Below are positions 46,016 through 63,198 of a stretch of 64,000 bases of DNA, piece after piece. The stretch is taken from sequence record MZ475898.1, one strand, 5' to 3'. The position numbers and the translations under genes were made by a program. How positions within the stretch are numbered: the stretch's first letter is position 1; each line of letters starts with the position of its first letter. Below the pieces are notes generated by a model. The model ran no database searches, had not been told where the DNA came from, and saw only the letters and a program-made list of their open reading frames with translations.

Positions 46016-46483
46016 TCACAACGCCAATCCAATCCCTATCGCTGCAACAATACGCGTAAACCAAATCTGCATGTTGGCCGACTTCTGGTCTTCTATACGC
46101 GCCTTCCTTTCTGCTGCTAAGTCTTCGGAATAACCGTTAGCACGCACCTCTTCGGCTTGTGCAAGTCTCAGCAACTTGTTGCGCTCATCAATCGTCAGGT
46201 TAAGAGTCTCAAGCAGCTTGTTACGCTCCTCAGTTCTGTCCTTACCTGCCTTGTACAGATTTATTAGATCAACCATCCCTTTCTTGTCCAGAGTTGCCAG
46301 CTTCTGATCGTCAACTTGCTTGAGCACAATCTGAGGCTTGGCAGGGACCTTTTCTGATTCCCACTGGACTTTGTTGATCTGCTGAACATCCTGCATGGTA
46401 GTCTTTTTCTGAGCATCAATGTTACTCAGATTGGACGAACATCCGCACAGAATAAGGCACAACAGCACAATGATAGTTTTCAT
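46016..46483 (-). CDS. spanin-like lipoprotein with additional C-terminal TM helix
   Basis: Signal MKTIIVLLCLILCG|CSS, coiled-coil body, C-terminus IWFTRIVAAIGIGLAL. Confidence 0.65.
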   Translation of the reverse strand: MKTIIVLLCLILCGCSSNLSNIDAQKKTTMQDVQQINKVQWESEKVPAKPQIVLKQVDDQKLATLDKKGMVDLINLYKAGKDRTEERNKLLETLNLTIDERNKLLRLAQAEEVRANGYSEDLAAERKARIEDQKSANMQIWFTRIVAAIGIGLAL

Positions 46484-46785
46484 AGCTTGTTGTATTTCTC
46501 CGCCAGATCATCCATAGAATCGTTTTCAGATGCGGGCTTAGGGTCAGTCTCAGGCTTCCGTTCGTTCAAGCCTGCCACAGCATCGTTGACAGTCTTGCTG
46601 TCTTGGACCTGATTGGCGATAGCTTGTTCTCGCGTATTCTCTGCGGCTTTCTCTTCACCTGACGTGATTGATTCACTCGCTTTCGGACGACGAAAGAAAA
46701 GTGCGGCAACAATCAACACGACTACTGAGGCGAAAATCTTCCAGTACTTCTTAAAAATTTCAATAGCCTTCGACATACCAATCAC
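46480..46785 (-). CDS. i-spanin-like protein
   Basis: Basic N-terminus, single TM (IFASVVVLIVAALFF), polar periplasmic tail; next to a lipoprotein. Confidence 0.55.
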   Translation of the reverse strand: MIGMSKAIEIFKKYWKIFASVVVLIVAALFFRRPKASESITSGEEKAAENTREQAIANQVQDSKTVNDAVAGLNERKPETDPKPASENDSMDDLAEKYNKL

Positions 46786-47106
46786 CTATTGGTTGTTATC
46801 GTTCTGATCAGTGTTCTGACCGTCAGCATCTTCTTTCTTCGACTTGGAGATTTGAGTGTTAATCAAGTTCTCTACCGTAAAAGCAAGAGAGAAATAGGTA
46901 AGATGATCTGTTTGGCCACTGCGAATCAAACTAATCATCATGCCTGTAGAGACGCATAGTGCCGCGATACTTGCGACAGGATTGAGCGTCCAGTACTCTT
47001 TCCATCCCAAGTGTTCGCGTCGCGTCTTAACGATATAGTTCATCAACACTCCGCCGATGTATGTGCAGGTGAAGGCGAAAATATCGGTATACGACAAATG
47101 CTCCAT
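46786..47106 (-). CDS. putative holin
   Basis: 2-3 hydrophobic segments, charged C-tail, upstream of spanin-like genes. Confidence 0.5.
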   Translation of the reverse strand: MEHLSYTDIFAFTCTYIGGVLMNYIVKTRREHLGWKEYWTLNPVASIAALCVSTGMMISLIRSGQTDHLTYFSLAFTVENLINTQISKSKKEDADGQNTDQNDNNQ

Positions 47107-47409: not shown

Positions 47410-47458
47410 CCTCGTATTAGACTCTAGTAAATTAGCTTACTTGAAAGTAATAACGAGG
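47410..47458 (-). promoter_or_regulatory. RBS-sequestering hairpin with TAATTT in the loop
   Basis: mRNA CCUCGU(U)AUUA pairs with UAAUACGAGG; TAATTT at 47434-47429. Confidence 0.6.
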
Positions 47459-48042
47459 TCGTTGATTACTGTGGCTTTCGACTGATCATTGCCTGTTGTA
47501 GCGTTGGCATAGACCTTACCACCAGCAATGCGTAGTTCTGCACTGCTGTTCTCGTTACCCACTGAACCCACTGCAAGGAAGTCACAGTAGTATGAAGAGG
47601 TAGGCAGACCTGTTGTCAGATTCAGTGCTAACCCACCTCCAGCAACAAGAGCAAACCACGTAGGCGTTGCGTCCTTCGTGATATAGCTGTTGCGGGTATC
47701 GGTGTTAGCAGCAACCAGTTTGGTGTTCATGGCAGCACCGAGAGTAATCGGTACGTTACTTGCCATAAGCGTTATGCTAGGCTTTAAGCCGGCAACGCCA
47801 CCAACGTAGTCTGCATTGCGTGCAGTCAGGAACGAAGTCAGGTTCTGATAACATGCGTTCGAGCCTGCGTGCTGCGTAGCGCCGTTCAGGAAAGCATTCA
47901 TCTCAGCTTTAGTTGGCTGAGTACCTGTGAACAGCAACACTGCCACGTTCATTGAAGCATACGCGGTAGGCACAGAGCCAGACACATATGTTGAGATAGC
48001 GTTGCGCTGCATTGCGTTTGCTGTAGCTGGTAACATTCTCAT
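47437..48042 (-). CDS. virion fibre paralog, short type A (201 aa)
   Basis: LLFTGTQPT...ATPTWF...VGSVGNENSSAELRIAGG. Confidence 0.75.
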   Translation of the reverse strand: MRMLPATANAMQRNAISTYVSGSVPTAYASMNVAVLLFTGTQPTKAEMNAFLNGATQHAGSNACYQNLTSFLTARNADYVGGVAGLKPSITLMASNVPITLGAAMNTKLVAANTDTRNSYITKDATPTWFALVAGGGLALNLTTGLPTSSYYCDFLAVGSVGNENSSAELRIAGGKVYANATTGNDQSKATVINDLVITFK

Positions 48043-48944
48043 TACACACTCTCCAGGAAGTTATCAGCGATGCGGAACGACAGGTCAGGCACGGCTTGCT
48101 GTGTGAACTTACCTATGTTAGGCACACCCAGCGTCATATCTGTAGGCACGTCAAGCACCAGACCGTAATAGTCGTCTGCAACGTTACCCAGATAGTTGTT
48201 CGCGCCAGAAGGCATAGCAAGCAGCAACGGAACCAACACAACGTGCGTGAGAGCAGCACTAACGTATTCACTGGACCGTTCTGCATATAGCGTGAATGAC
48301 TGATAGGCTGTGGTTGCTGTCTTGCATGTGATGCGAATACGACGAGTAGTAATGTCCAAACCATCATTCATGCCTTGAGCAAGCCCTGTGATTGACGTCC
48401 ACACGTTGTTGCTATCCAGATAGCTAATGTCAAACCAGCCACTGCTTGGAAGCTGTGCAGAGTTAATCATCATACCACGGATATGCAACGAGCGACCGTA
48501 ATCGTACTCAACCACATCACCTAACGCCCATGAAGGAGAAACAGGACTAGTGAAGTCGAATGCGGCAGAGAGCTGTGAGCACACTTGCTGTGGTGTATTG
48601 TTAGTACCGATAGCAGGCGTGAGACGCGAATACTCAGGGTAAGTAGCAAACGTATCAACAGATGCACCAGCAATGAACTGCGTGCGCTTCTGACCGTAGC
48701 CTCCAATAGGAAGCATTGAACGACCACGACTGAACTGACGCGTCAACAGGCCATTTGCTTCTGTGCCTTGAGACTGGAACTTATATTCCACAGCACAACG
48801 TGAGCTTGCAATCAAGTCCATGAGTGTGCGTGGAATGGATGCGCTACTACCGTTACGGAAGAAAGCAGCAAACCCGCTAGAGTTAGCGGCCGTGCCTACT
48901 GTCTGTAAGAACTGGTATAGCGCAACTTTTTCAGAGACTAACAT
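48042..48944 (-). CDS. virion fibre paralog, long type B with F5/8C-like insert (300 aa)
   Basis: VEYDYG...RRIRIT; TAATG coupling to type A gene. Confidence 0.7.
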   Translation of the reverse strand: MLVSEKVALYQFLQTVGTAANSSGFAAFFRNGSSASIPRTLMDLIASSRCAVEYKFQSQGTEANGLLTRQFSRGRSMLPIGGYGQKRTQFIAGASVDTFATYPEYSRLTPAIGTNNTPQQVCSQLSAAFDFTSPVSPSWALGDVVEYDYGRSLHIRGMMINSAQLPSSGWFDISYLDSNNVWTSITGLAQGMNDGLDITTRRIRITCKTATTAYQSFTLYAERSSEYVSAALTHVVLVPLLLAMPSGANNYLGNVADDYYGLVLDVPTDMTLGVPNIGKFTQQAVPDLSFRIADNFLESV

Positions 48945-48953
48945 CGTGCCTCC

Positions 48954-49484
48954 TTAGAGCTTGATGCGAATGTCAGATGGACGCACGGCAACGTTAGCAG
49001 TTACGGTACCGCCAACGATTTTAAGATCCGCTGTGGAGTTCTCATCGCCGACAGTTCCCCAGACCAACGCACTGCACGTAGTAGATGCAGACCAGTTTGC
49101 AAAAGCAGATCCCGCTGAGGCCGCTGCACACAGACGCATCATGAACCAAGTAGGAGTACCTGACGTGGCAATCGCAAAGTTGTTAGCCTGTGAACTGAGA
49201 GGGATAACAAGCGACAACGCATCTGGGTCGATAGTAGGTACGATAGACAGACACGCTAAGTCACCGAGAAAGTTTGACGCTGTAGCGAAAGGTGCAACCG
49301 CAGCAGCCGTCCACGTAGGCAGCTGACTGGAGCCCAACAGAGCAAGGACCTGATCGTCTGTAGGCATAGTTCCGTTGAACAGACCTACATGCAGCACGTT
49401 GTCCAACATAGTTGAGTTAGGAACAAAACGCAGCAGCAGGTTGACCAAACTCTGGTTACTATTAAAAGAAGCAGATACACGCAT
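48954..49484 (-). CDS. virion fibre paralog, type A (176 aa)
   Basis: VGLFNGTMPT...GTPTWF...GTVGDENSTADLKIVGG; start moved to 49484. Confidence 0.75.
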   Translation of the reverse strand: MRVSASFNSNQSLVNLLLRFVPNSTMLDNVLHVGLFNGTMPTDDQVLALLGSSQLPTWTAAAVAPFATASNFLGDLACLSIVPTIDPDALSLVIPLSSQANNFAIATSGTPTWFMMRLCAAASAGSAFANWSASTTCSALVWGTVGDENSTADLKIVGGTVTANVAVRPSDIRIKL

Positions 49485-50548
49485 TAGTAGTTCTCCAGAG
49501 TTACAGGACGCAGGTTGATAACAAGACTCGGGCACAGTTGCTCCTGTGCGGGAATCACAGTCGCGTCAGGCATAAGAATGTCGTTTGACGCAGAGACTTT
49601 CAGATCGTCTGTCACGCTAAGGCCAAAGTGGTTGAAGACGCGTCCGTAGTTATACCCAGACTGGTTCGACACCGCAGGGATAGCAGTGAATGACGTGGCA
49701 AAAGCAAACAAGCATCCCACCATGTGACCGATTTTACTCAGGGTACGCGGTGAAGTGCCTGAAACGTAGTCGCCATAGAAGTGCAGAGCAAACTGACCAA
49801 AGCCCGTAGACCACTGAGTCGCTACGTTAGCAGCTTTAGTGACTAAACGGAAACGACGGCCAGTAACAGTTGAAGGTAACTGGAAGTATTTCTCCGAGGC
49901 TGCGCTGGCGTTGAACAGGTTAGCTGTTACGCTAGTAACGTCAGTCCAGCTACTACCATTCTGCACCTGCAGGAAGACCATATACGGAGCAGATGAGACC
50001 AAGACGTTGTTGCTGCCTGTAGCGAACGTCAATGACGCCAGAGAGTTGATAGCAACATCAGCACCAAAATCGTACTCAGCAATCGTCCACGAACCATCTG
50101 TGTTCTGCACACGAGGTTGAGGCAGAGAAGCTGTAGCATTCGCAGGGAATGGAAGAAGGTTAGCTACGGTAGTTGACGCACAACGGTGAGCCAGAATAGT
50201 GAAAAAGATTTGATCTAACTGTAGAGCAACGTTGGTCAATGAGTTCTGCGACAGCACGTTCGCATAGTCTGCGCTGTACGTAGGCAGATTCACTTTAGGC
50301 AACACGCGTTTGCCACGATAGCCTTGCACAGTAGTCCACGCAGGCGCAGGAGATACCTGGTATGCCGTCACTGCGTTAGGAGTAGCTGTGAACTGACCGC
50401 CACTTGGCGCCGCTGTAAAAGAACGCGCAGACACCATGCTGTTCAGCACAGTTTGTAGATCATAGTTCAAGGGGTCAGGCATAGCCCCCTCAAGGAATGC
50501 GCCGTAGATTTGCTGCGTGGTACTCGAATTAAATGGAGCGAGTTTCAT
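49484..50548 (-). CDS. virion fibre paralog, type B (354 aa)
   Basis: AEYDFGADV, LPSTVTGRRFRLV, FALHFYGDY, VTDDL; start moved to 50548. Confidence 0.75.
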   Translation of the reverse strand: MKLAPFNSSTTQQIYGAFLEGAMPDPLNYDLQTVLNSMVSARSFTAAPSGGQFTATPNAVTAYQVSPAPAWTTVQGYRGKRVLPKVNLPTYSADYANVLSQNSLTNVALQLDQIFFTILAHRCASTTVANLLPFPANATASLPQPRVQNTDGSWTIAEYDFGADVAINSLASLTFATGSNNVLVSSAPYMVFLQVQNGSSWTDVTSVTANLFNASAASEKYFQLPSTVTGRRFRLVTKAANVATQWSTGFGQFALHFYGDYVSGTSPRTLSKIGHMVGCLFAFATSFTAIPAVSNQSGYNYGRVFNHFGLSVTDDLKVSASNDILMPDATVIPAQEQLCPSLVINLRPVTLENY

Positions 50549-50599
50549 ATTATGCCCTTGTGTTGAAGACACATCAAATTAATGAGTGCGGCACATATA
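50546..50599 (-). promoter_or_regulatory. start-codon-sequestering hairpin with TAATTT in the loop
   Basis: mRNA UAUAUGUGCC pairs with GGCAU(A)AUAUG; TAATTT at 50581-50576. Confidence 0.45.
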
Positions 50600-50614
50600 G
50601 CACCGCACGCAATC

Positions 50615-51145
50615 TTATACCTGGAACGACAGATCGAGGAAGCGATAAGCCTGACTGGTCTTAATCGTACCACCGATGAACTGGAGCTCCGCATCAGACC
50701 CTTCTGCACCGACCGTACCGATAAGTACAGGACCTGCAAGCAGCGTACCCGGGGAGGACGTTAGCATAAAGTTAGCCCACGAAGCCACAGCAGCCGCACC
50801 AGCAGCGGCAACGATACGCGCTACGAAGTAGGTAGGTGTACCATCAGCCACGCCAACAAGTGTACGACTACTACCCGCAAGAGGCAGAGAGATTGTACGA
50901 GATGAAGGGTTGACAGAAGGTGTAAGGTTATCAATGGCGATAGAGCCAAGGAAGTTAGCCTGACTCAAACCTAAACCTGTAATACCCAGCACGTTCCAGC
51001 CTGATGTAAGAGACAGAGCCATGAGATTTTTCATCTGAGGCTTAGTGCCTTTAAACAAACCAATATGCAACGTATTTGCCGCAATTGCGGTAGCGGGAAA
51101 CACTGAGTTCAGTTGAGCCAAAGAAAGGCCACGGTTACTAATCAT
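50615..51145 (-). CDS. virion fibre paralog, type A (176 aa)
   Basis: IGLFKGTKP...GTPTYF...GTVGAEGSDAELQFIGG. Confidence 0.75.
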   Translation of the reverse strand: MISNRGLSLAQLNSVFPATAIAANTLHIGLFKGTKPQMKNLMALSLTSGWNVLGITGLGLSQANFLGSIAIDNLTPSVNPSSRTISLPLAGSSRTLVGVADGTPTYFVARIVAAAGAAAVASWANFMLTSSPGTLLAGPVLIGTVGAEGSDAELQFIGGTIKTSQAYRFLDLSFQV

Positions 51146-52218
51146 ACGCCTCTCCCTACGATTGCGTCAGCACGAACTTTGAAAGCAGGCACAGGCACGT
51201 CCGTAAACTTATCCAGCGTGTAAGTTGCGTCACGCATGTAGATGTCCGAAGTCGCTGCTTTCGTCAGGTCATCTGTGATAGTCACGTGGAACATCGCGCA
51301 GTAACGGCCAAGCACTGTAGTAATAGCAGCAGGATAGTTGAAAGCCCACTCAGTGGTAGTAGTATAGCCCGCGGCAGGAATTACATGCAGCATAGTCATG
51401 TGCTTGTACTTGCCCAATGTACGTGGCTTGGTAATGGTATAGTTGCCAAAGAAATGCAAACCAAACGGATAGTGACCAACAGTAGACCACGGGAAGGTCG
51501 GGTTCTTGTTTACGAGGCGGAACTTCTGCGCTTTAACAGAAGAAGGCAACACGTAATGATTAGAACCGTAGTTAGTGGACACACGGGTAGCTGCGTATAC
51601 GTCTACTGCATCTATCCACTGCCCGTCAACTTGAGCCTGCAAAATAGTTTGCTGGGTATTCGTTATCATGTACGTGCTGTTGGTAGAACCACATGTTGTG
51701 CCGAGGATGCTCTTGAGTTCAATCTCTGCACCGAAGTCATATTCAGCACACAGCCACCAGCCTTCCGTAGTCGTGTTATAGATATTGCTCAACACACGGT
51801 TACCTGATGTAGAAAAGGCAACAATCGTATCAAAGTGATGTGCAATCATCGCAGCAGCTATAGCCTCGTTGTAATACTGAGCCTGAATAGAGAAACGCTG
51901 ATCGATAGGTGCGAAACGAATTTTAGGCACGATACGCTTAGCACCAGCAGGCACGGTAATAGCCGAGTTACGTGGAACGGTTTCGATCCAAGAAGGAACA
52001 AAGTTGTTACCGCTAAACGTTGTATTGCTAATGCTTGGCGTAAACTGAGAAGCGATCGGCGATCCAATACGGGCCATGTTAAACAGACGCATAGCAACAG
52101 CTTCATTGAATGCGCTGTGAATCCCTTTCTCACCATCGGCAGGTGCGTCAGTATCGTAGAGTAGACCAAAATACTGAGCGTTGCCTGACAGCAGAGGGTT
52201 GTACGGTAGAATCTCCAT
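51142..52218 (-). CDS. virion fibre paralog, type B (358 aa)
   Basis: AEYDFGAEI, LPSSVKAQKFRLV, FGLHFFGNY, ITDDL. Confidence 0.75.
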   Translation of the reverse strand: MEILPYNPLLSGNAQYFGLLYDTDAPADGEKGIHSAFNEAVAMRLFNMARIGSPIASQFTPSISNTTFSGNNFVPSWIETVPRNSAITVPAGAKRIVPKIRFAPIDQRFSIQAQYYNEAIAAAMIAHHFDTIVAFSTSGNRVLSNIYNTTTEGWWLCAEYDFGAEIELKSILGTTCGSTNSTYMITNTQQTILQAQVDGQWIDAVDVYAATRVSTNYGSNHYVLPSSVKAQKFRLVNKNPTFPWSTVGHYPFGLHFFGNYTITKPRTLGKYKHMTMLHVIPAAGYTTTTEWAFNYPAAITTVLGRYCAMFHVTITDDLTKAATSDIYMRDATYTLDKFTDVPVPAFKVRADAIVGRGV

Positions 52219-52225
52219 AATGTCC

Positions 52226-52807
52226 TCAGCTAAAAGTTATGTTATTGAGAACGATAGGACCGCTCAGTGTGTAAGTACCATCACCATTATCCGTGAGAGT
52301 CGCACCCATCTGAGTCAAGTCAGCAGGCGTAAGCTCAATAACGGAGGGTATCGCAGTTGTTGTACCGATGGAGGCAACGCCACTGAGGAACAAATACATG
52401 CGATTGAACGGTTGCGTGTATGTGATGCGACCCAAGTTCTGAATCAGAATATCCAACATACGAGTACCATCACCCTGATTGATGATACGCACGGCGTTAG
52501 AACTGGAATTCACGACTGCACTCATCGTACAGTTAACGCCAGCAGCAGTCAGCGCTGTGCTCAGAGCATTGATCGTGATGTTCGACGCATACAACGTATT
52601 CCAAATAGAGTCTGGAATGGTATCGCCCGTAGAGAAAAGAATAGCTGCTCCTACTTCGGTACTGTACGGAGCACCGCCGCCTTGCACAGCAACAGCGTTA
52701 TAGGGGGTCACTAGTGCTGGCACCCAAGGCGCATCCACTGGAGAACTTGAGTTGTTAGAACTCAGAGCATCACCACGCATGTTCATCATGGCTTTAGAAA
52801 TATACAT
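52226..52807 (-). CDS. putative virion protein (193 aa), divergent A-like
   Basis: AILFSTGDTIP; position in array. Confidence 0.6.
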   Translation of the reverse strand: MYISKAMMNMRGDALSSNNSSSPVDAPWVPALVTPYNAVAVQGGGAPYSTEVGAAILFSTGDTIPDSIWNTLYASNITINALSTALTAAGVNCTMSAVVNSSSNAVRIINQGDGTRMLDILIQNLGRITYTQPFNRMYLFLSGVASIGTTTAIPSVIELTPADLTQMGATLTDNGDGTYTLSGPIVLNNITFS

Positions 52808-53709
52808 CAGCTACTCCTTGTGGTGAAGCGCAGCTTAGGACAATACATGATTGTCTTCTGGTTAGGAATAACGTCGCCCACGATCTTGAATGGACCTGAC
52901 GTACCGCACGCACCCGCCGCAAACATAATGTCATCAGAGTAGTCAATGCTACCATGAGTGAACGTATTGCAGTGAGTGAAAGCAGCCCACGTAGGAGCAG
53001 TTGCAGCAGCGCTTGGTGCAGCATCTACGGAACTCAACAGGATGCGAGGCATGGACGCAGTGGTGCCTGAGTATTTGAAGCGATAGCGCTTAGCAGCACG
53101 CGGTGTAGACAGAGCAAGACAAGTAGCCTCACCTGCAACAGCCGTAGCACTACCTAACGCGTATTCAGTTGCACCATCGTCAGACAACGCTACCAGCGTA
53201 AAGCCGTCAGAAACAGTACCGAGGAACTTGATGTGCGTTACGGTAACCGCAGTGTCAAACTCAATGTCCGTATTGCTTGAGGCGAAACGTGAGTACACGG
53301 ACGCTACGGACCCAACGCCAAGAGGCAGCGTGATGTTTCTGTCAGTGAAACCGCTACGCGTAATGCGATTAGGCAGAAGCTGATTAACAGCGAGCGCAGC
53401 AGTTCCCACAGTCCCGTAGTACGAAACGCCTTTAGGTATATACTGCGACTGTAGAGCAAGCGCAATAACGTTACCGTTCTCTGTTCCTGTCACTGGGTTA
53501 CGCACAATACCAATTGCTTGGTTGTACATGTCAGCAAGTGACTTCTGGTTGAAAGCCGCAGCGAAGCCCGCATCAGATGTAGGCAGCTTACCGCTAAATG
53601 CAAAGATATTCCAGCCGGCGCCTACGTTAGGGTCATTCAGGACACCAGCTACGTTTGAGGCCGACCCAACAACTGCTTGAGCCATTTGGCGAGTATTGAT
53701 GATTTTCAT
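52807..53709 (-). CDS. virion fibre paralog, type B (300 aa)
   Basis: IFAFSGKLPT, DIEFDTAVTVTHIKF, AKRYRFKY, PTWAAF. Confidence 0.7.
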   Translation of the reverse strand: MKIINTRQMAQAVVGSASNVAGVLNDPNVGAGWNIFAFSGKLPTSDAGFAAAFNQKSLADMYNQAIGIVRNPVTGTENGNVIALALQSQYIPKGVSYYGTVGTAALAVNQLLPNRITRSGFTDRNITLPLGVGSVASVYSRFASSNTDIEFDTAVTVTHIKFLGTVSDGFTLVALSDDGATEYALGSATAVAGEATCLALSTPRAAKRYRFKYSGTTASMPRILLSSVDAAPSAAATAPTWAAFTHCNTFTHGSIDYSDDIMFAAGACGTSGPFKIVGDVIPNQKTIMYCPKLRFTTRSS

Positions 53710-54167
53710 TATCCCACCACCGGTGCAACAGGTTTGTTGGTAACTTTCGTATCGGACAGATCGAGATTGCCTGTCTGCACACGAAACACGATGTTATCAA
53801 ACAGCACGTCCAGTGTTGCTGTTGTGACGAACTGTCCACACACCACAGGCGCGTACTGCACAGGCGCTGGTGGGTTTGAGTTGAACGACTCAGGCATAAA
53901 CTTAGACTGAGACTGCGTAGCCAGCACAGGTTTAAGTGTCAGCGTATCAACAGCCGCAGTACGCTTGCGCTGAATAAGCGACCACACATTCGCACCAAGC
54001 GTCAACGAAATAGCGGTAGCGCTAGTACGCGTCAGACTAATAGCCGACTGGTTTTCGTTGTCGTACTTACGGTTGGGCTGAGAGGAGCTGCTAATCTCTT
54101 GCTGTGAAAGCACGAACGTAAAGTCCGCAAACATATCTGGGTCGTATGTGACGACAGGAATAAACAT
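53709..54167 (-). CDS. putative virion protein, type D (MFIPVVTYD, 152 aa)
   Basis: N-terminus shared with 56232..56879. Confidence 0.65.
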   Translation of the reverse strand: MFIPVVTYDPDMFADFTFVLSQQEISSSSQPNRKYDNENQSAISLTRTSATAISLTLGANVWSLIQRKRTAAVDTLTLKPVLATQSQSKFMPESFNSNPPAPVQYAPVVCGQFVTTATLDVLFDNIVFRVQTGNLDLSDTKVTNKPVAPVVG

Positions 54168-54169
54168 CG

Positions 54170-55264
54170 TTACACTCCTTGGCGAATGCTGTATTTGTCA
54201 ATGATAGGCGTGTAGGCCGCATTCGCACTTGAACCATAGCCGCCTGTAACGATACTACCAGTAACATTCGGCTTAACAATCGCATACGTGAAGCTATCCA
54301 CAACAGTACCGTTGATGGAAATAGTATGGATGTTTGACAGTGCGTTATACACATACTTGATGTGGACGTTGCTGGCGGTTTTCATCGCGGCATACGCAGC
54401 AATAGGACGAACCACTTTAGCAGCAGCCGCACCGCCACCTGAGTTGTTCCACAACAGGAAGCCTTTCTCGTTCGAACGGTCAAAGGATAGCGTCAGTCTG
54501 TCAGTTAACGTGGTGCCCATCTTGAGCAGCGTGAACTCAGAGTAGTCCGTAGTGCTTGACTGACGATAATCAAACTCAATGGTGAATGACTGACTCAGAT
54601 CGATATTGGACGTGAGAGACATAACGCCTGTCGTGCCTAAATCGATACCAGCAGCACCGTCAGCAGGAGCTTTAGCGTTACCACTTACAGTCGCAGTGGC
54701 TCCAAGATAGTCAGCAAAGCTGGTGGCGCCAGGCGTCCACAACGAACTGTCCAGAGCTACAACCTCTGAACCGCCAAGCCATGTCGCTGTTGTGTTCTCT
54801 ACCCACATGTTGGTCAGTGGAATAGTGAAGCTGTTGATCGTAATCTGCGTCTTATACCCCGCTGCATCGTACTTGATGTTCAGGTCAGGATAAAGCAGAG
54901 TAACGTCCGTGCCTACAGTCAGACACACAGGCAAGATGCCACCCAGAATAAGATGAGTAGGCACGCCTTCTGCAACTGCGGTCAACAGGCAATCAGATAC
55001 GGAAATCTTCTGACGGTCGATAGTGCGAACGCAGTTGGTGCCTTTAGCCAGCACAGTACAGATACCGCTAGACGCTGCTAGTGCTGCATCAAACGAGTAA
55101 CCTGCACCAGTCTGTGTCTGATAGTTAAGGCACTTATTAATGTCTGTCTCAGTGAATCCGTTGTTGAGACGAACGAGATAACAGGACTTATCGTCGGCGG
55201 TAGCCTGAGCAAACAGACGAGTAAGCTGAGGTACGGCAGATGCTGCAAATAAACTGTATTTCAT
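54170..55264 (-). CDS. virion protein with A-like N-terminus and C-terminal LamG/ConA-like domain (364 aa)
   Basis: AVAEGVPTHL; FTIEFDY...HIKYVYN...ISING...IDKYSIRQGV; start moved to 55264. Confidence 0.7.
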   Translation of the reverse strand: MKYSLFAASAVPQLTRLFAQATADDKSCYLVRLNNGFTETDINKCLNYQTQTGAGYSFDAALAASSGICTVLAKGTNCVRTIDRQKISVSDCLLTAVAEGVPTHLILGGILPVCLTVGTDVTLLYPDLNIKYDAAGYKTQITINSFTIPLTNMWVENTTATWLGGSEVVALDSSLWTPGATSFADYLGATATVSGNAKAPADGAAGIDLGTTGVMSLTSNIDLSQSFTIEFDYRQSSTTDYSEFTLLKMGTTLTDRLTLSFDRSNEKGFLLWNNSGGGAAAAKVVRPIAAYAAMKTASNVHIKYVYNALSNIHTISINGTVVDSFTYAIVKPNVTGSIVTGGYGSSANAAYTPIIDKYSIRQGV

Positions 55265-55265
55265 G

Positions 55266-56222
55266 TTATACCTCAGTAGACAGGCGCATCTGAGCGATAG
55301 TAGCGAACTCACCCGGGCCCAATGCGGTAGCCTGTACTTCGATTGGCTTACCACTACCGATAGCTCCGACTTCGCAAGCGAAATAAGTTGGGATGTAGTT
55401 GCCATTTGCCAAAGCACCATAGTTGGTATCTTGAATCACGACGATAGCGCTTTGCACAGTCTTGTAACTCGCATTCACACCAACATCAGATGCAGTCACA
55501 GGAATAGCGCGGCGGTTAGCTACAGAGTGGACAAGTCTAAAGCGATTGCTTGCAGCAGGCACGGTGGCCAGCATGTTACCTTCCTGGTTGGCTGCAATAG
55601 ACCACGCAACAGCAGTTCCAATAGAACCATCACTGTTGATAGGAGCAATCGTGCCGCTCGTAATCAGCGACTGATCGTTAACGTCAGACAGCATGGCATT
55701 AATCGTTACCACGTTGTCATACGTCAGGTCAGTAGTTGATAAGTGAATCCCAGGCTGCGCTGCATCGTGAGGGATACCCGCATAGTCCCAAGGACGATAG
55801 CCCGCTTGACCAATACCCCACAGTGCTTTGTTGCCTGCATCGATCGAGGTAGTGTACGCAGTTTGAATCGCAACGTTTGCAGCAGCCGAGTAGCCTACAG
55901 GAAATGCCTTAGAAGGATAGTGAATCGTTGCCCCGTTCTTTGGTTCGTACACAGAACCCGAACGCGCTTTCCATCCCTCAGACAAATCGAGCAGTGGCAG
56001 CAGGCCTTCTGTTGTTGGACGCAATACTACCTTAGTTGCTGCAACTGCGTTGTTGAACAGGTTACGCATGTCAGTCAAATGCTGACGGAAGTTGCCTTGA
56101 TCTGCAATGGTGTTCTCAAAGAAGAACACGTTGGCGATAATACCATTGGACGCTGTATTCGCCCAGCCGGAGCCTTGCTGTAGCACAGACAGCGGCAGAA
56201 TGTTATGTCCTAAGATACGCAT
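55266..56222 (-). CDS. virion fibre paralog, divergent type B (318 aa)
   Basis: ASNRFRLV, CEVGAIGSG. Confidence 0.65.
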   Translation of the reverse strand: MRILGHNILPLSVLQQGSGWANTASNGIIANVFFFENTIADQGNFRQHLTDMRNLFNNAVAATKVVLRPTTEGLLPLLDLSEGWKARSGSVYEPKNGATIHYPSKAFPVGYSAAANVAIQTAYTTSIDAGNKALWGIGQAGYRPWDYAGIPHDAAQPGIHLSTTDLTYDNVVTINAMLSDVNDQSLITSGTIAPINSDGSIGTAVAWSIAANQEGNMLATVPAASNRFRLVHSVANRRAIPVTASDVGVNASYKTVQSAIVVIQDTNYGALANGNYIPTYFACEVGAIGSGKPIEVQATALGPGEFATIAQMRLSTEV

Positions 56223-56231
56223 CAGAACCTC

Positions 56232-56879
56232 TTAATCATATAAAAATACACCAGCACGCAGACGCACTCTATCAATAACTCCAAACGGTCCAGCGACATT
56301 TCCATATCTGCCTATAGCCCAAGGCGTATCGCTTACTTTCGGCATAGCCTGTACGACTTGAGCAACTTGTTGGCCATTGACAAAGATCGTGTGGGTCTTA
56401 GCTGTTGCGTCATAGACATACTTGAAAGGGACCATGCTCAAAGTCAACAGGCCGCCAAGAACACCAGACTGAGCAATTTGCTTTTCTGCCCATGAGCCGC
56501 CCGTGCTATACCAAACGCCTATGCGAATGTTAGAGCCATTCCATTGGTTCTGCATCAACAGCTCCACCTTGTCTGGGTTAGACTTTAGGTAGGACATGAA
56601 TATGAACTGTGCTAACACATTCGTATCAGTCTGTGCATAGAGCAAATCAAGCGTATATGAGGCAGTCGTATCAAACAGCAGATTACCTGCGGTCTTCACG
56701 TTACCACCACAGACAATACCTACATCAGACAGAGACAATGAAGAAGCAGCAAACTGATTGCCTACATAATCAGTGAACCCGTCTGCGGAGAAGTTGTCAC
56801 GGTCAAAGGCCACCAGCTCATCGCCTGTGAACCAAGGAGGCACGTCCGCTATTTCGTATGAAACGACAGGAATATGCAT
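56232..56879 (-). CDS. type D N-terminus plus LamG/ConA-like domain (215 aa)
   Basis: MHIPVVSYE; KYVYDAT...IFVNG...WAIG...IDRVRLRAGV. Confidence 0.7.
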   Translation of the reverse strand: MHIPVVSYEIADVPPWFTGDELVAFDRDNFSADGFTDYVGNQFAASSLSLSDVGIVCGGNVKTAGNLLFDTTASYTLDLLYAQTDTNVLAQFIFMSYLKSNPDKVELLMQNQWNGSNIRIGVWYSTGGSWAEKQIAQSGVLGGLLTLSMVPFKYVYDATAKTHTIFVNGQQVAQVVQAMPKVSDTPWAIGRYGNVAGPFGVIDRVRLRAGVFLYD

Positions 56880-56880
56880 G

Positions 56881-57378
56881 TTAGAACTCCTTAGAGTCTC
56901 TGCATACAGTCGCTAAGAACTTACCGTTACGCAAGTTGTCTGAACTAAGAATCAGGTCAGCACCCGAACCCGCAGCACCGATAGTCAAGATCAAGAAGCC
57001 ACCGTAAGGCGTGCTTGCAATGCTCTTGTTGAACACAATCACGTTGTACTGAGCAAGCAACTCGGTGATTGTTCCAGCAAACGTTCCCTGAAGTGTGGCA
57101 GCAAGTTTGAATTTATATTTATTGCCTGAACCGTGAATCCAGCGAACAGGATTGTTAGTCACAGACGTTAGGTCAAGCACAGCAGTTGCGCCAATCGCAG
57201 CCTGAACGGTAGTACCATCAGCAACTACGATGTTCGCAGGGTCAGGCACTTTCGCAAAGCAGATTGTTTTCTGCATGTTTGAAAGGCCATACTTCAACGG
57301 CGGATCAGCAGCAGGACGTTTGCCTGCGTCTGGGATAACGATGCCGTTAGCGACCAGCGGGAAAGAAATGATTTCCAT
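56881..57378 (-). CDS. putative virion protein, A-like (165 aa)
   Basis: LTIGAAGSGADLILSS. Confidence 0.65.
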   Translation of the reverse strand: MEIISFPLVANGIVIPDAGKRPAADPPLKYGLSNMQKTICFAKVPDPANIVVADGTTVQAAIGATAVLDLTSVTNNPVRWIHGSGNKYKFKLAATLQGTFAGTITELLAQYNVIVFNKSIASTPYGGFLILTIGAAGSGADLILSSDNLRNGKFLATVCRDSKEF

Positions 57379-57442: not shown

Positions 57443-58498
57443 CTACAGCGAAACGGTTTTTGTTAGCGCAACGTCTGTGATAGTTGCTACGGATATCTGA
57501 GGGATATCGCCAGGCAGCGTAGATGTAGCGTGAGTGAAGTCCGTACCTTCGCGCAGCACTTGCACCATACACGGATGCTGTGGGTCAAACGCTATTGGAA
57601 GCATAGCCCACGTCAGTTTGGTTGCTGGCGTATCAGCACGCGTAACAAGAGGCACAGAATACAGACGATCTGTTTCAACAAAGTTCGTGGTGTTATTCAG
57701 CGCACCCTTTGAGTATGATGTGCTGTACGACCAACCACCTCCTGAGAAATAGCGCGTACCGTACACGTTAGTTCTCCACGAATACAGAACACGCAGGCTT
57801 CTAGCAGGCGCAGAACTCAACGTAGTCTGAGCATTGGCTATGAGCGCACTCTGACCTACAATACCAGACCGCACCGTTACGTTCGTTGCGTCAGAGTAGG
57901 TATAGGTATCCATATAGACGTTAGTGATAGAGCTGGAATCACTAGAAGACCAGTTACCTATTGTGCCTATGTTACCACTGTTAGAGTCAGACATGGGTAC
58001 AGTCACACCTGTCTGCACTGCACACTTAGGGCTTAGGTTAGCTTCTGTGATTGTACTGTCAAATACAGGCAACAACATAGAAGCAGATGAAGGAATGCGC
58101 TTACCATCAATGTTCGTATTGTCCAGTAAGCTGCCTTGCATTGTAACAACAGAACCTTCTGCAAACAAAGTACCGACGCTGTAGTAACGTCTGAATACTT
58201 CTTGAGGAGTCCAGACAACGGATTCGGCAGCTGTAGGCAACGTTGACCCGTACGTAGGGTTATCTATCATTGTGTGATAGTATCGCATACTACGATAGCC
58301 TGCCATGCGCGTACATTGAAAGGTATCGTTTGCTACATACTGAGAGAACGAACGCGCCAAGTTAATCGTGTTCATTGCAGAGGCTGCGGTAGACTGTGCT
58401 GTTGGAGGAACTGTGTCATCCGTGAACAGAAATACCCTTCTTCTAGCTAGTGCTAGTTTCTTCTCCAACAGCTTAGCCCCACTTGAGGCAAATAACAT
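57443..58498 (-). CDS. virion fibre paralog, type C (351 aa)
   Basis: MLFASSG...RRRVFLF...LARS. Confidence 0.7.
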   Translation of the reverse strand: MLFASSGAKLLEKKLALARRRVFLFTDDTVPPTAQSTAASAMNTINLARSFSQYVANDTFQCTRMAGYRSMRYYHTMIDNPTYGSTLPTAAESVVWTPQEVFRRYYSVGTLFAEGSVVTMQGSLLDNTNIDGKRIPSSASMLLPVFDSTITEANLSPKCAVQTGVTVPMSDSNSGNIGTIGNWSSSDSSSITNVYMDTYTYSDATNVTVRSGIVGQSALIANAQTTLSSAPARSLRVLYSWRTNVYGTRYFSGGGWSYSTSYSKGALNNTTNFVETDRLYSVPLVTRADTPATKLTWAMLPIAFDPQHPCMVQVLREGTDFTHATSTLPGDIPQISVATITDVALTKTVSL

Positions 58499-58507
58499 AA
58501 ACTCTCC

Positions 58508-59542
58508 TTAGACAGAGATAACCGATGCAACCCCGGGGACAGCGAGCGTTTGGAGAAATGATACATCGGGCTCAACGTTTGTCTGTTGCTGTACGTTGTT
58601 TTTGAAGTCAGTACCTTTGCGGAAGATCTCACAGCTAATCTTCTCGCCGTTCCATATAGGACAGCCCAGCCATTCAATGTCGAATGCAGGAGTGTCAGCA
58701 GGCGCAGTTGACGCAAAGCCGATCTTAACAACAGGCTTATGTTGAAGCGGAACGTCTACGTTACCTGGTCTGGAGTACGTCCAGGTATTCACGTTATTGC
58801 CTACAAGCGTGTTATAGATATAGTTCTGCACACCGTACACAGAGGCCATACCCGCAACAGGAGCGGAACCAAACAGTCGTATGATATTACCTATCGAGGA
58901 AGAACCAAAGCTGATGTTGCCTTGAGCATATGAGTTATCCTCAGTTCCGTACGAGGCTCTTGATGCAAAGTACGTGTAGCTCCAACTGTTGTTACTACCA
59001 CTGCCAGACGAGTTGTATGTGCCAGTCCTATCAGGGAAGTGACCACCTACTCCGTAAAGAGACGCGTACTTCTTAGGAATCAGCACGGTCTTTATCGTGC
59101 CAACAACAGGCAGATGGCTAGGGTTATACGTGTCATAAGCAGAAGGTGCAGACAACGACACAGGACCTGCCAGTGGGTTAGCAAACGAATTGTCTGCATT
59201 TAGATAGCTCATCACACCGTGCTTGAGAGCGCGTTGTTGGGCAGTAAGCGTATCTGACATGCTGAATATCGGTGAGTTGTTCACAGTGCGCTCATAGGCA
59301 TCATGATTCACCTCAGCAGGAAAGAAATACTGACTCGCAATGCCACTGCATGAACACCCGAGTAGTTTGTTGTCTGCTACACTATACCCGATAGAGCGAG
59401 CTTCTACCATATTCTTTACCCATGCCACAGGGTCAGTGAGTGCAGCTTCTGGTGTTATTGAACTGTCAAACATGAAGGCACGCTTACGCGCAACAGCCAT
59501 AAGCGTCTTCTGGATGTTTCCACCTGACGATGCAAAAATCAT
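58508..59542 (-). CDS. virion fibre paralog, type C (344 aa)
   Basis: MIFASSGG...RKRAFMFD...VEARS. Confidence 0.7.
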   Translation of the reverse strand: MIFASSGGNIQKTLMAVARKRAFMFDSSITPEAALTDPVAWVKNMVEARSIGYSVADNKLLGCSCSGIASQYFFPAEVNHDAYERTVNNSPIFSMSDTLTAQQRALKHGVMSYLNADNSFANPLAGPVSLSAPSAYDTYNPSHLPVVGTIKTVLIPKKYASLYGVGGHFPDRTGTYNSSGSGSNNSWSYTYFASRASYGTEDNSYAQGNISFGSSSIGNIIRLFGSAPVAGMASVYGVQNYIYNTLVGNNVNTWTYSRPGNVDVPLQHKPVVKIGFASTAPADTPAFDIEWLGCPIWNGEKISCEIFRKGTDFKNNVQQQTNVEPDVSFLQTLAVPGVASVISV

Positions 59543-59551
59543 ATTATTGCC

Positions 59552-60649
59552 TCATAGCGTAATAGAGGACGGGGCATTGCACCAGTCTTTAACTGCTTGA
59601 GCAACTACCAAGTCAGCTTGTTGGGCTACTGTCGTCCCTGTCTGCTTAATATCGGCGGAATCGTCCTGTGCAATATCGAACATAGCGAGCCTGTACCCAC
59701 CAACAGTCTCGTAAGCAATGGCACCAACAGTCAGCACACACGCACCATCATCAGCCATGCCTGTTACAATGACAGAAGGAACATCGGGAATAGTCATTGC
59801 ATTCTGATCTGCGTTCGGCGTTAGTCCTTCATTGAATGAGTTGTTAGTGGTACCTCCACCTATAGGGTACGTGGTGAAGCGCCGCTCCTGCATAGTGATT
59901 ACCATAGCGCCCGACACCGTGTTGAATGCCTGGGGATCGAATACATCTGCCCAATTGCCATTCCCGCCATAAGTCGTATCGTTCGGCAGCATAATATCAA
60001 TATAGTTTTGCGCCTGATAAGTATTAGGTATAGGGTAGAACACAGCAGACGAATAGAACTGGTCATAGTAATAGTTAACACCAGATTGACCTGAACTACG
60101 AAACGATATTGTCGCGTTATTGAGAAACTTAGGCTGGTACTGCGTCTTATTCTTCGTACTACGCATACTGGTGACGATGCGCTGCGGATAAAGATACAAG
60201 CGAGAGGCCAGCTTTGCTTTATCGTACTGCCCAACAAGAGTAGAGCCAAGAATGTTGCTCGTCTTGTCTCCGATAGTACCCCTGGGTGCGAGATACTTCA
60301 CGGTGCAATAGCGGTCAGCTTGTTGGTCTGGCGTGTTGCCGTCTGAGGAAACGTTATACATGCCATTCCATGAAGCACTATTCGACGCGTTGTTCTGGTT
60401 GAATAGCTGAATGTTTGCGCTGTGTGCAGGGTAATAGCGATTGGACTTTACACCACTAAGCGCTGTTGATTTAAGAGCGTCTACGGTACCGCAAGTCATC
60501 GCACGACATTCAGGCACGGACTGTAATAGATACTGGCGTGCTTGTCTGATAGTGTCTTTACTGATTGTGCTGTCAAACAGATATAAGGAGGACATTGCAC
60601 GAGTTCGCACAGCTTTATCTCGTACTCCTCCGACGGAAGCGAATAGCAT
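59552..60649 (-). CDS. virion fibre paralog, type C (365 aa)
   Basis: MLFASVGG...SLYLFD...PECRA. Confidence 0.7.
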   Translation of the reverse strand: MLFASVGGVRDKAVRTRAMSSLYLFDSTISKDTIRQARQYLLQSVPECRAMTCGTVDALKSTALSGVKSNRYYPAHSANIQLFNQNNASNSASWNGMYNVSSDGNTPDQQADRYCTVKYLAPRGTIGDKTSNILGSTLVGQYDKAKLASRLYLYPQRIVTSMRSTKNKTQYQPKFLNNATISFRSSGQSGVNYYYDQFYSSAVFYPIPNTYQAQNYIDIMLPNDTTYGGNGNWADVFDPQAFNTVSGAMVITMQERRFTTYPIGGGTTNNSFNEGLTPNADQNAMTIPDVPSVIVTGMADDGACVLTVGAIAYETVGGYRLAMFDIAQDDSADIKQTGTTVAQQADLVVAQAVKDWCNAPSSITL

Positions 60650-60656
60650 AGCTACC

Positions 60657-61712
60657 TCATAGTGTGTAGGATTTCGTTGTTACTAAGGCAGCCAACACCG
60701 CACTCGAACAAGTAAAAGCAGGCTGAGTGCCTACCGAAGTGCCTGTCGTCAGTGTTAGGTCCGAACCAATGTCCATCACCATAAGCTCGCTGGATTGTTC
60801 CGTGGCTACAGCGATAGCGCCAAAGCTCAATGCTGCATCTGGGTCATCGGCCTGAGTAACATCAATGTAAGGCAGTTCGACGCACACCTCATTGGGTGTA
60901 CCGTTTCGCCAGTTCTGACCACTGCCATAGCTCGTATACCACGTGGCGTTAGCGAACCATGTGCGCGTGTAGTTATACTGTGGGTTTATCATGTACAGAC
61001 CGCCATACTCTGTACGCAGCGCACCTAAAGCAGTAGGCGTACTGTTTTCATAGTAACCAGCACCAACAGGGAAAGATACACCAGGCATCGTCCAGAATCG
61101 AGAAACACCAGAACCCAGAGAGATGAATCCAGGAGTTATGCTCTGCGTATAATCAAAGTAGTCCGTGCTCGTACCGGTACGTCCTCCCATCGTGCTCTTT
61201 GGCCGGAGTTTAACGGACTTGCCGCCAAACAAAGAAAGCCGGGATGTAGGCAGCAGATACGTACGGCTCATGCTATCGAATGAAGTAACACCACCGTAAC
61301 CAGATTGCGTACCGAGCATGTTGCCTGTAGCGACATCAAAAGCAGCTTTAGTTGCAGGCGAGGCTACCGTAACAAAACGCGCAGCATAGTTCTCAACAGT
61401 CTGACCGTCGCTTATACCATTTGTCAGACGGAAGAACCAACCGTTGTTACTGGACACAGGACTGAACTGACCGATACGTCCTGTATGCGACAAATAAAAC
61501 TTATTGTTCTTTATACCGCCTATAGCAGTAGCATCCAGAGTATTACCTGTCATTGTGTGCGTGCAGCTACGCGCTTCATGGCACACGTTCAGCAAACCTA
61601 CAGGGGTGCGAACATTCTGTTTGTCTACGGACGTGTCAAACAAAAATAGGTGCTGCATAGCGGACTTGCGAATGTTTTCCTGTATAACAGCTCCAGCAGA
61701 AACGAATAGCAT
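60657..61712 (-). CDS. virion fibre paralog, type C (351 aa)
   Basis: MLFVSAG...HLFLFD...HEARS; start moved to 61712 (GGAG RBS). Confidence 0.7.
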   Translation of the reverse strand: MLFVSAGAVIQENIRKSAMQHLFLFDTSVDKQNVRTPVGLLNVCHEARSCTHTMTGNTLDATAIGGIKNNKFYLSHTGRIGQFSPVSSNNGWFFRLTNGISDGQTVENYAARFVTVASPATKAAFDVATGNMLGTQSGYGGVTSFDSMSRTYLLPTSRLSLFGGKSVKLRPKSTMGGRTGTSTDYFDYTQSITPGFISLGSGVSRFWTMPGVSFPVGAGYYENSTPTALGALRTEYGGLYMINPQYNYTRTWFANATWYTSYGSGQNWRNGTPNEVCVELPYIDVTQADDPDAALSFGAIAVATEQSSELMVMDIGSDLTLTTGTSVGTQPAFTCSSAVLAALVTTKSYTL

Positions 61713-61723
61713 ACAAGCTCCTA

Positions 61724-61760
61724 AAACGAAAGAGGGCAGACACCTTTCGATGCCCACCCT
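61724..61760 (-). terminator. intrinsic terminator with GAAA loop
   Basis: On - strand AGGGTGGGCATC-GAAA-GGTGTCTGCCCT-CTTTCGTTTT. Confidence 0.7.
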
Positions 61761-62358: not shown

Positions 62359-62580
62359 TTAGGCGATTCGCACTTCACCAGTCACCGCGTACGGGAAGGT
62401 AATCTTAACAGTGTCCGAGTCAACGATGACTACATCCAGCGGCAGCACTTGATGTAGCTTACCATCAGGTTGCATAGTGCATGTAGTCACGGCGACAGGA
62501 CGCCCGAAGTTGTGCAGAATCGTCCATTCAGAAGCAGGCGTGTCTTGCTTGAAGCTACGCCCCATCGAATAGTTGAGCAT
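62359..62580 (-). CDS. single HNLG-type beta-sandwich virion protein (73 aa)
   Basis: WTILHNFGRPVAV...DSDTVKITFPYAVTG. Confidence 0.7.
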   Translation of the reverse strand: MLNYSMGRSFKQDTPASEWTILHNFGRPVAVTTCTMQPDGKLHQVLPLDVVIVDSDTVKITFPYAVTGEVRIA

Positions 62581-62601
62581 AAGAGCCTCGCGATTGTGGC
62601 G

Positions 62602-63198
62602 TTAGTACAGGATTACAGTGCCAGACTCAGGATTGTCGAAGGTAATCGTCAACTGGCTGGTGCTGTCATGCACGATAGACTTAGGCTGTACTTCGTTCGC
62701 ACCTTGATAGATACGCACCGCAGGGTTATAACCGAGATTATGCACAACAACCCACGTAGCCAGATTCTCATAAGATGCAGTGAATGCAACGGTAGGAGTA
62801 GGCAGACCTGACTCAACGCCAGACAACAGTACAGCAGTACCGGCCACGGCAGAAGGGAAGAGGACAACGATGTTGTTAGCATCATCAGCGTGAATTGAAG
62901 ATGGCTGCACCACGTCACCATTCTCATCGTAGCACTGTACGATAGGCGTAGCGGTATTCATCTTGTGGTTAATCTCCCAACGAGACGAAGCGGTAGGCTG
63001 CGAGTAGCGAACCATAGTCATCTGTTGAGTTAATGGAACCCAGACAGGAACATCTTCGATAGACACGCAGAACATCAGACGCTTGTCCATGAAGATAGCC
63101 ATACCAGGCTTAGGGTTAAGAGGCCAGTCAGTCGCTACATCAAACGCGAAGTTAGCAAGTGAGCCAAACTCTAAATCAAGAGTCCCTAGGACTTTCAT
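62602..63198 (-). CDS. virion protein with two HNLG-type domains (198 aa)
   Basis: WEINHKMNT...DANNIVVLF and WVVVHNLGYNP...STSQLTITF. Confidence 0.7.
   Translation of the reverse strand: MKVLGTLDLEFGSLANFAFDVATDWPLNPKPGMAIFMDKRLMFCVSIEDVPVWVPLTQQMTMVRYSQPTASSRWEINHKMNTATPIVQCYDENGDVVQPSSIHADDANNIVVLFPSAVAGTAVLLSGVESGLPTPTVAFTASYENLATWVVVHNLGYNPAVRIYQGANEVQPKSIVHDSTSQLTITFDNPESGTVILY

Follow-up and report, generated by a model that had tools for sequence, protein, structure and literature searches.

We propose that the genes g95–g83 on the minus strand of Erwinia phage pEa_SNUABM_25, whose host is Erwinia amylovora, probably form a late, tail-associated array for parts of a receptor-binding tail-fibre network, in which long lectin-like proteins serve as receptor-binding modules and short proteins, distant relatives of the garland proteins of Agrobacterium phages such as Milano and 7-7-1, serve as connectors. 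The array products would reside in the virion, the short proteins would dimerise and contact the long ones, and the lectin-like domains would bind sugars. The array extends from 57378 down to 47437 of the window, which comprises bases 1–64000 (64,000 nucleotides, nt) of the 263-kilobase (kb) record MZ475898.1. Within 40–75 kb of this record all genes are annotated as ‘hypothetical protein’ in GenBank, and for the genes of the block neither Pfam nor PHROGs, where they fall into families without a known function, assigns one.

The short A family comprises A1–A3 (g87, g85 and g83), and the long B family comprises B1–B3 (g88, g86 and g84). Family profiles were built on orthologues from nine relatives (AD1, pEa_SNUABM_1, _2 and _5, Alexandra, Y3, Yoloswag, JA29 and Yersinia phage fHe-Yen9-02) and compared all-against-all with BLAST and hhalign. 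Structures were predicted for A1 and B1, and the orthology of their matches among predicted viral structures (BFVD) was judged from the length of the proteins. In the order of the minus strand, the block reads as follows (aa, amino acids):

56881–57378, minus strand: g95, 165 aa, with 78–89% identity to the seven relatives among the Erwinia phages and AD1, and 54–58% to JA29 and fHe-Yen9-02.
56232–56879, minus strand: g94, 215 aa, a free-standing LamG-like protein matching the C-domain of g92 (hhalign 99.3%).
55266–56222, minus strand: g93, 318 aa, predicted long class; the B1 model matches a 314-aa Y3 protein (orthologue by length) at E = 6e-4.
54170–55264, minus strand: g92, 364 aa, with an N-domain (1–153) of predicted A-like fold and a ConA/LamG-like C-domain (157–363).
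53709–54167, minus strand: g91, 152 aa, between g92 and g90, assigned to phrog_28837 only and without relatives in hhalign.
52807–53709, minus strand: g90, 300 aa, with a discoidin-like centre; the B1 model matches a 297-aa Yoloswag protein (orthologue by length) at E = 1.4e-7.
52226–52807, minus strand: g89, 193 aa, short partner of g90, possibly of A-like fold (weak Foldseek matches).
51142–52218, minus strand: g88 (B1), 358 aa, with a centre (approximately residues 90–263) of discoidin/F-lectin/CBM32 fold.
50615–51145, minus strand: g87 (A1), 176 aa, garland-protein homologue, its start overlapping the g88 stop (ATGA).
50586–50608, minus strand: terminator-like hairpin (9-bp stem with 6 GC) within the 66 nt that separate g87 from g86, from a consensus scan only.
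49484–50548, minus strand: g86 (B2), 354 aa, a g88 paralog (BLAST 4e-28, hhalign 100%) with the same discoidin signature.
48954–49484, minus strand: g85 (A2), 176 aa, garland-protein homologue and best garland-profile match in the window, its start overlapping the g86 stop (TAATG).
48042–48944, minus strand: g84 (B3), 300 aa, distant long-class member (phrog_30594; hhalign 95.8% to g86 over residues 143–299).
47437–48042, minus strand: g83 (A3), 201 aa, oldest A paralog (hhalign 98.4–99.6% to A1/A2), its start overlapping the g84 stop.

The A1 model shares its fold with a solved chain of phage 7-7-1 (PDB 9rkv), identified by its length as gp014, the ‘garland’ protein, 36 homodimers of which surround the long and short tail fibres at their distal ends (PMC12796354). 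Consistently, a profile of 37 garland-family sequences aligns with one of 27 A sequences over 112 columns, corresponding to nearly whole proteins (hhalign 93.4%, E = 2.4e-7), the g85 group alone reaches 93.5%, and reciprocal searches with plain hidden Markov models (HMMs) of the two families agree. The A members of phage NCTB bridge the families, as they are matched by the garland HMM at 1e-7 to 2e-5. Both gp014 and gp012 of 7-7-1 also display, in the same order, the three sequence elements that the sequence-only reading had picked out in the array, namely a strand of hydrophobic residues that closes with G-x-x-P, a strand with T-W/Y-F and, towards the C-terminus, G-x-V-G...D/E-L. No other small protein of the block exceeds 2.2% against the garland family in hhalign, and the sub-threshold matches of the garland HMM to g84, g94 and g95 are collinear in g95 alone, which is the third-best match in the window and bears a weak garland-like C-terminal element (hhalign 22.6% to the A C-terminus). 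Searches of PDB sequences with the A, g92 and g90 profiles gave no match, and since BLAST matches to the garland family are confined to phages of Agrobacterium and Rhizobium, the link to the A family is new. The garland proteins are annotated as virion-associated and have been visualised by cryo-electron microscopy (PMC12796354). A1–A3 are members of the garland family, and the N-domain of g92 joins them by predicted fold.

By BLAST and profile–profile comparison, the proteins of the array fall into four groups: the A family (BLAST 2e-10 to 4e-18, hhalign 98–100%, all phrog_17152), the clear paralogs B1 and B2 together with the distant g84, the pair g90 and g93 (hhalign 94.7%), and g92 with g94, related through the C-domain of g92. 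The relationship of g84 to B2 covers its C-terminal half, and it belongs to a separate PHROG. At the level of structure, five long genes (g93, g90, g88, g86 and g84) are predicted to be of one class, since the B1 model matches, along most of its own length, the Y3 and Yoloswag proteins that correspond by length to g84, g90 and g93; the match to the 288-aa Y3 counterpart of g84 has E = 5e-9. The same model matches nine NCTB proteins of 308–402 aa. In addition, the A1 model matches the counterparts of g92 in JA13 (339 aa, probability 1.0) and Yoloswag (351 aa, 0.91), as well as those of g89 in Yoloswag (186 aa) and JA13 (197 aa) with Foldseek probabilities of 0.63–0.69, the last being a similarity for which hhalign provides no profile support. 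From the structural class of the long genes and the fold of the g92 N-domain, it follows that the alternation of long and short genes is wider than the three pairs first noticed and comprises g93–g92, g90–g89, g88–g87, g86–g85 and g84–g83, with the status of g89 uncertain.

The B1 model consists of an N-terminal beta/alpha part, a central beta-sandwich that belongs by fold to the galactose-binding-domain-like superfamily (F5/8 type C/CBM32), and a C-terminal tail, the C-terminal third, that is poorly modelled. The discoidin-like insert that had been suggested for the B members is borne out by fold in five long genes, although it is sub-threshold in Pfam, where PF00754 scores 14.7 bits on g86 against a gathering threshold of 28.2 and has no match in g88 or g84. 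For g90, the F5/8C neighbours in the ESM Atlas provide a lead only. As for the LamG domains, that of g92 finds some support in Laminin_G_3 (PF13385), which scores 21.1 bits against a threshold of 27.6 and is found at E ≤ 0.01 in two of eight orthologues, whereas g94 has no Pfam match and is LamG-like only through its homology to g92. The LamG module changes place, being C-terminal in g92, free-standing in g94 and, in Dickeya phage JA29, part of a fusion with the orthologue of g93 (JA29_083, 524 aa); it is absent from fHe-Yen9-02, where the N-domain of g92 is a separate 150-aa gene. No orthologue of g94 was found in the nine relatives, and the gene is confined to the pEa_SNUABM_25 clade. We also note a resemblance between g94 and g91 in their first 8 residues. 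The notion of a modular repertoire is supported, as the array has the appearance of rapidly diverging lectin-fold proteins with small partners, and we infer that the discoidin/CBM32-type domains of the five long proteins and the ConA/LamG-type domains of g92 and g94 are candidate glycan-binding modules.

The alternation B–A–B–A–B–A described from the sequence for 52218 down to 47437 is confirmed (g88, g87, g86, g85, g84, g83), as is the coupling of stop and start codons within the pairs, by ATGA in g88/g87 (4-nt overlap) and by TAATG in g86/g85 and g84/g83 (1 nt). The g90/g89 junction likewise has a 1-nt TAATG overlap. The three B–A pairs are separated by 66 and 9 nt (7–66 nt across the array), and a GGAG-type Shine-Dalgarno sequence precedes every start. 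For four genes, the longest open reading frames (ORFs; 48954–49535, 49484–50572, 54170–55420 and 60657–61757) begin further upstream, with GTG or ATG; the ATG codons that GenBank gives as starts (49484, 50548, 55264 and 61712) have GGAG-type sites upstream and fit the orthologues better. Three terminator-like, GC-rich hairpins followed by T runs, located after g100 (61760–61733), in the g87–g86 gap (50608–50586) and after g82 (47156–47135), may split the block into transcription units; sigma-70-like sites are no more frequent than in shuffled sequences.

The pairing extends beyond this phage. Among 11 genomes (the window, the nine relatives and NCTB), an A gene lies directly behind a long gene in 31 of 31 cases, and in 28 of them the two genes overlap or are no more than 1 nt apart; the partner in fHe-Yen9-02, 305c, is a B member (E = 2e-18). 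In pEa_SNUABM_25 the array lies downstream of fibre and virion-protein genes, and in the marine phage NCTB (LT598654, 141.2–154.9 kb) a larger array with nine long B-like proteins, four A members and a weaker fifth, BN7874_193, comes immediately after the genes for the sheath, the tape measure and ‘tail assembly’. Within the proposed network, the long proteins would display candidate glycan-binding heads, and dimers of A proteins, either homo- or heterodimers, may clasp the distal parts of the receptor-binding proteins, by analogy with Milano and 7-7-1, and thereby link them into a network at the periphery of the baseplate. With translation coupled in this way, every long protein would be provided with a connector of its own in matching quantity. 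Because garland proteins dimerise with each other and then bind fibres, docking of A–A dimers onto B would, by this analogy, be at least as likely as the B–A heterodimer envisaged from the sequence.

Several observations weigh against this network. The identity between A and garland proteins is approximately 16%, making the relationship remote, and the g87 group alone reaches a probability of 14% against the garland family. The discoidin and LamG domains lie below Pfam thresholds, globular proteins of 300–360 aa are atypical of fibres, and the long proteins, like all other families of the block, show no similarity to gp013 or to the C-domain of the gp015 fibre of 7-7-1. The lipoprotein and membrane genes that follow the array indicate a neighbourhood that is not purely structural. 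Finally, we found in the literature no virion proteomics, expression data or cryo-electron microscopy for the group of Alexandravirus, Y3, AD1, Yoloswag and fHe-Yen9-02, so that the virion location is inferred.

The sequence-only reading had cast the B–A heterodimer as the building block of the fine whiskers on the contractile tail of hairy myoviruses. Indeed, Y3, AD1 and the JA phages, which carry the array, have been described as ‘hairy Myoviridae’ (PMC6143709), and the proteins are numerous, paralogous and lectin-like. However, Lu11, which is also reported with hairy morphology (PMC6143709) and which, together with PaBG and NCTB, has been placed with the pEa_SNUABM_25 lineage (PMC7412058), lacks both families: the profiles that do find the A members of the equally distant NCTB (1.5e-12 to 1.6e-5) pick up no member of A or B in Lu11 and PaBG. 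Furthermore, the garland homologues in 7-7-1 and Milano are located at the distal ends of baseplate fibres and not along the sheath (PMC12796354, PMC10811340). Since the families are missing from Lu11 and PaBG and the homologues of solved structure lie around the edge of the baseplate, we prefer a role in the baseplate and fibre network, and consider whisker units to be unlikely.

The layout, with a small coupled gene right behind a putative receptor-binding gene, is also the classic one for a fibre chaperone, such that the A proteins could act as assembly chaperones or adaptors of the preceding long protein (Tfa/gp38-type) rather than as stable parts of the virion. This we regard as distinctly improbable, as g83, g85, g87, g89 and g91 have no fibre-chaperone match in Pfam or PHROGs, and the homologues of A are resolved in virions (9rkv) and annotated as virion-associated. 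The same homology to virion proteins, together with the position of the NCTB array within tail modules, argues against a non-structural array whose lectin-like products, inside the cell or exported, would target the host envelope or serve phage–phage competition in the course of infection. Although all products are ‘hypothetical’, the membrane and lipoprotein genes g79–g81 adjoin the array and fast divergence would also suit conflict genes, inspection of the A and long proteins by eye reveals neither signal peptides nor membrane segments, and such a function appears very unlikely.

A further proposal of the sequence-only reading, that all members of the array share N- and C-terminal elements of one split scaffold, fares less well. 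The three motifs are significant in the A family alone, where HMMs of the N-terminal, middle and C-terminal motif score 25–68 bits, compared with at most 5.4 bits for all others among the 158 ORFs of the window; they are a signature of the A family. All-versus-all profile comparison places A versus B under 1% and does not support a single scaffold. A common scaffold for A and B was also sought with whole families, with B lacking residues 82–268 and with N70+C80 splices, but found no support, since all comparisons with A or garland profiles remained at or below 1.4% (hhalign) and the NC and CN orders of the B splices score equally. The N70+C80 splice of g93 is collinear with A over 109 columns (24.6% versus 2.8% for the swapped-order control), g90 and g95 match A weakly (18–27%) at the expected ends, g90 bearing weak A-like terminal motifs, and the A HMM gives split, collinear, sub-threshold matches on six long NCTB proteins. 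Depending on the number of proteins that it is taken to cover, one split scaffold ranges from doubtful to a tentative possibility. In its widest form, all of the approximately ten array proteins would derive from one garland-like scaffold, split in the long ones by a lectin insert, and would co-assemble into a bead-on-string heteromeric lattice with many glycan-binding heads that forms the ‘hairy’ coat. Such a lattice is compatible with the data because of the collinear matches of g90, g93, g95 and the six NCTB proteins, the A-like fold of the g92 N-domain and the poor modelling of the C-terminal third of B, which would be expected if this segment folds only on a partner, yet we consider it improbable.

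The phage groups with Alexandravirus, Sasquatchvirus (Y3), Yoloswagvirus, Rivsvirus and Salmondvirus, and 8 close relatives (9 database records) match the region at 96.5–97.5% identity. Relative to pEa_SNUABM_45, the reading frame is kept in 13 of 13 genes and the ratio of nonsynonymous to synonymous differences (pN/pS) is 0.02–0.15 where the genes differ; g93 shows synonymous differences only, and g94 and g95 are identical. The pairs are under purifying selection. The block is syntenic gene for gene in all nine relatives, and within-genus identity is 47–57% for the B–A pairs, g89 and g91 (one value 68%), 60–73% for g90, g92 and g93, 75–87% for g100–g102 and 86–89% for g95, the most conserved of the block. 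The pairs are thus fixed in place yet fast-diverging, since synteny is kept while identity is low. In the A tree, an old A3 clade is represented in every phage (support 100/99), whereas a younger A1/A2 split is present in Alexandravirus and Y3 only. As the split of A3 from A1/A2 parallels that of B3 from B1/B2, this suggests that the pairs were duplicated as units. In Alexandra, two coding sequences (Alexandra_85 and _86) are annotated in place of the g89 orthologue, where one continuous open frame of 192 aa matches g89 at 5e-54.

On either side of the array lie genes of other kinds. Directly after it (46016–47106, minus strand), g79 (155 aa) has a lipoprotein signal with a lipobox-like Cys and ends in a hydrophobic tail, resembling a unimolecular spanin in layout, and g80 and g81 are small membrane proteins; g79–g81 are kept in every relative, with 52–80% identity for g79. 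Upstream, g96–g99 (57443–61712, minus strand) are four paralogs of approximately 350 aa with the N-terminal ~75 residues in common, beyond which they are extremely divergent (at most 35% identity to any relative), g97 having no BLAST match in the nine relatives; the copy number of this family is approximately 1–5 across relatives, and none was found in fHe-Yen9-02. Finally, g101 and g102 (62359–63198) have a common domain of approximately 60 aa that recurs in an upstream tail-fibre-like gene and in relatives; the PHROGs label ‘HNH endonuclease’ on one such family looks like a mislabel that was carried over to the fHe-Yen9-02 annotation.

A role in a fibre network would provide the first testable function for three PHROG families listed as ‘unknown’ in approximately 60 jumbo-phage genomes, and would extend the garland family, described only in 2024–2025 in Agrobacterium phages, to jumbo phages of Enterobacterales and a marine jumbo phage. 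It is accompanied by a simple rule, a lectin-fold gene followed by a garland-type gene, to which every one of the 31 A genes in these 11 genomes conforms. The pairs, which diverge fast, are leading candidates for the determination of host range in phages under development to combat fire blight and soft rot, and the search for the ‘hair’ material of hairy myoviruses is narrowed, since the array probably does not encode the hairs.

The closest known systems include the garland proteins themselves and the connectors of BW3–tail-fibre networks, T4 gp8 and gp105 of Listeria phage A511. In 7-7-1, the fibre gene gp015 is followed by gp014, gp013 and gp012, such that the garland genes lie directly behind a fibre gene in the long-then-short order seen in pEa_SNUABM_25. 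In Milano (gp125/gp127) and 7-7-1 (gp012/gp014), the garland paralogs pair up as homo- or heterodimers before they bind fibres. The A proteins differ from them by an extra helical/loop segment (approximately 46–62 and 114–137), and their partners are lectin-fold proteins of 300–360 aa rather than a 587-aa fibre or tailspike. Unlike in Milano and 7-7-1, there is one partner for each garland-type gene and the arrangement is repeated; its hosts are Enterobacterales, with one marine phage in addition, whereas the garland proteins are known from Agrobacterium phages. Compared with F5/8 type C, CBM32 and F-lectin domains, the B domain has an inserted long helix (110–128), and it sits between phage-specific N- and C-terminal parts in contrast to F5/8 type C domains. 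The gene pairs of Mu, P2 and T4 (gp37/gp38) have the same long-then-short order and translational coupling, but their chaperones are not homologous to the short proteins of the array, whose relatives are structural.

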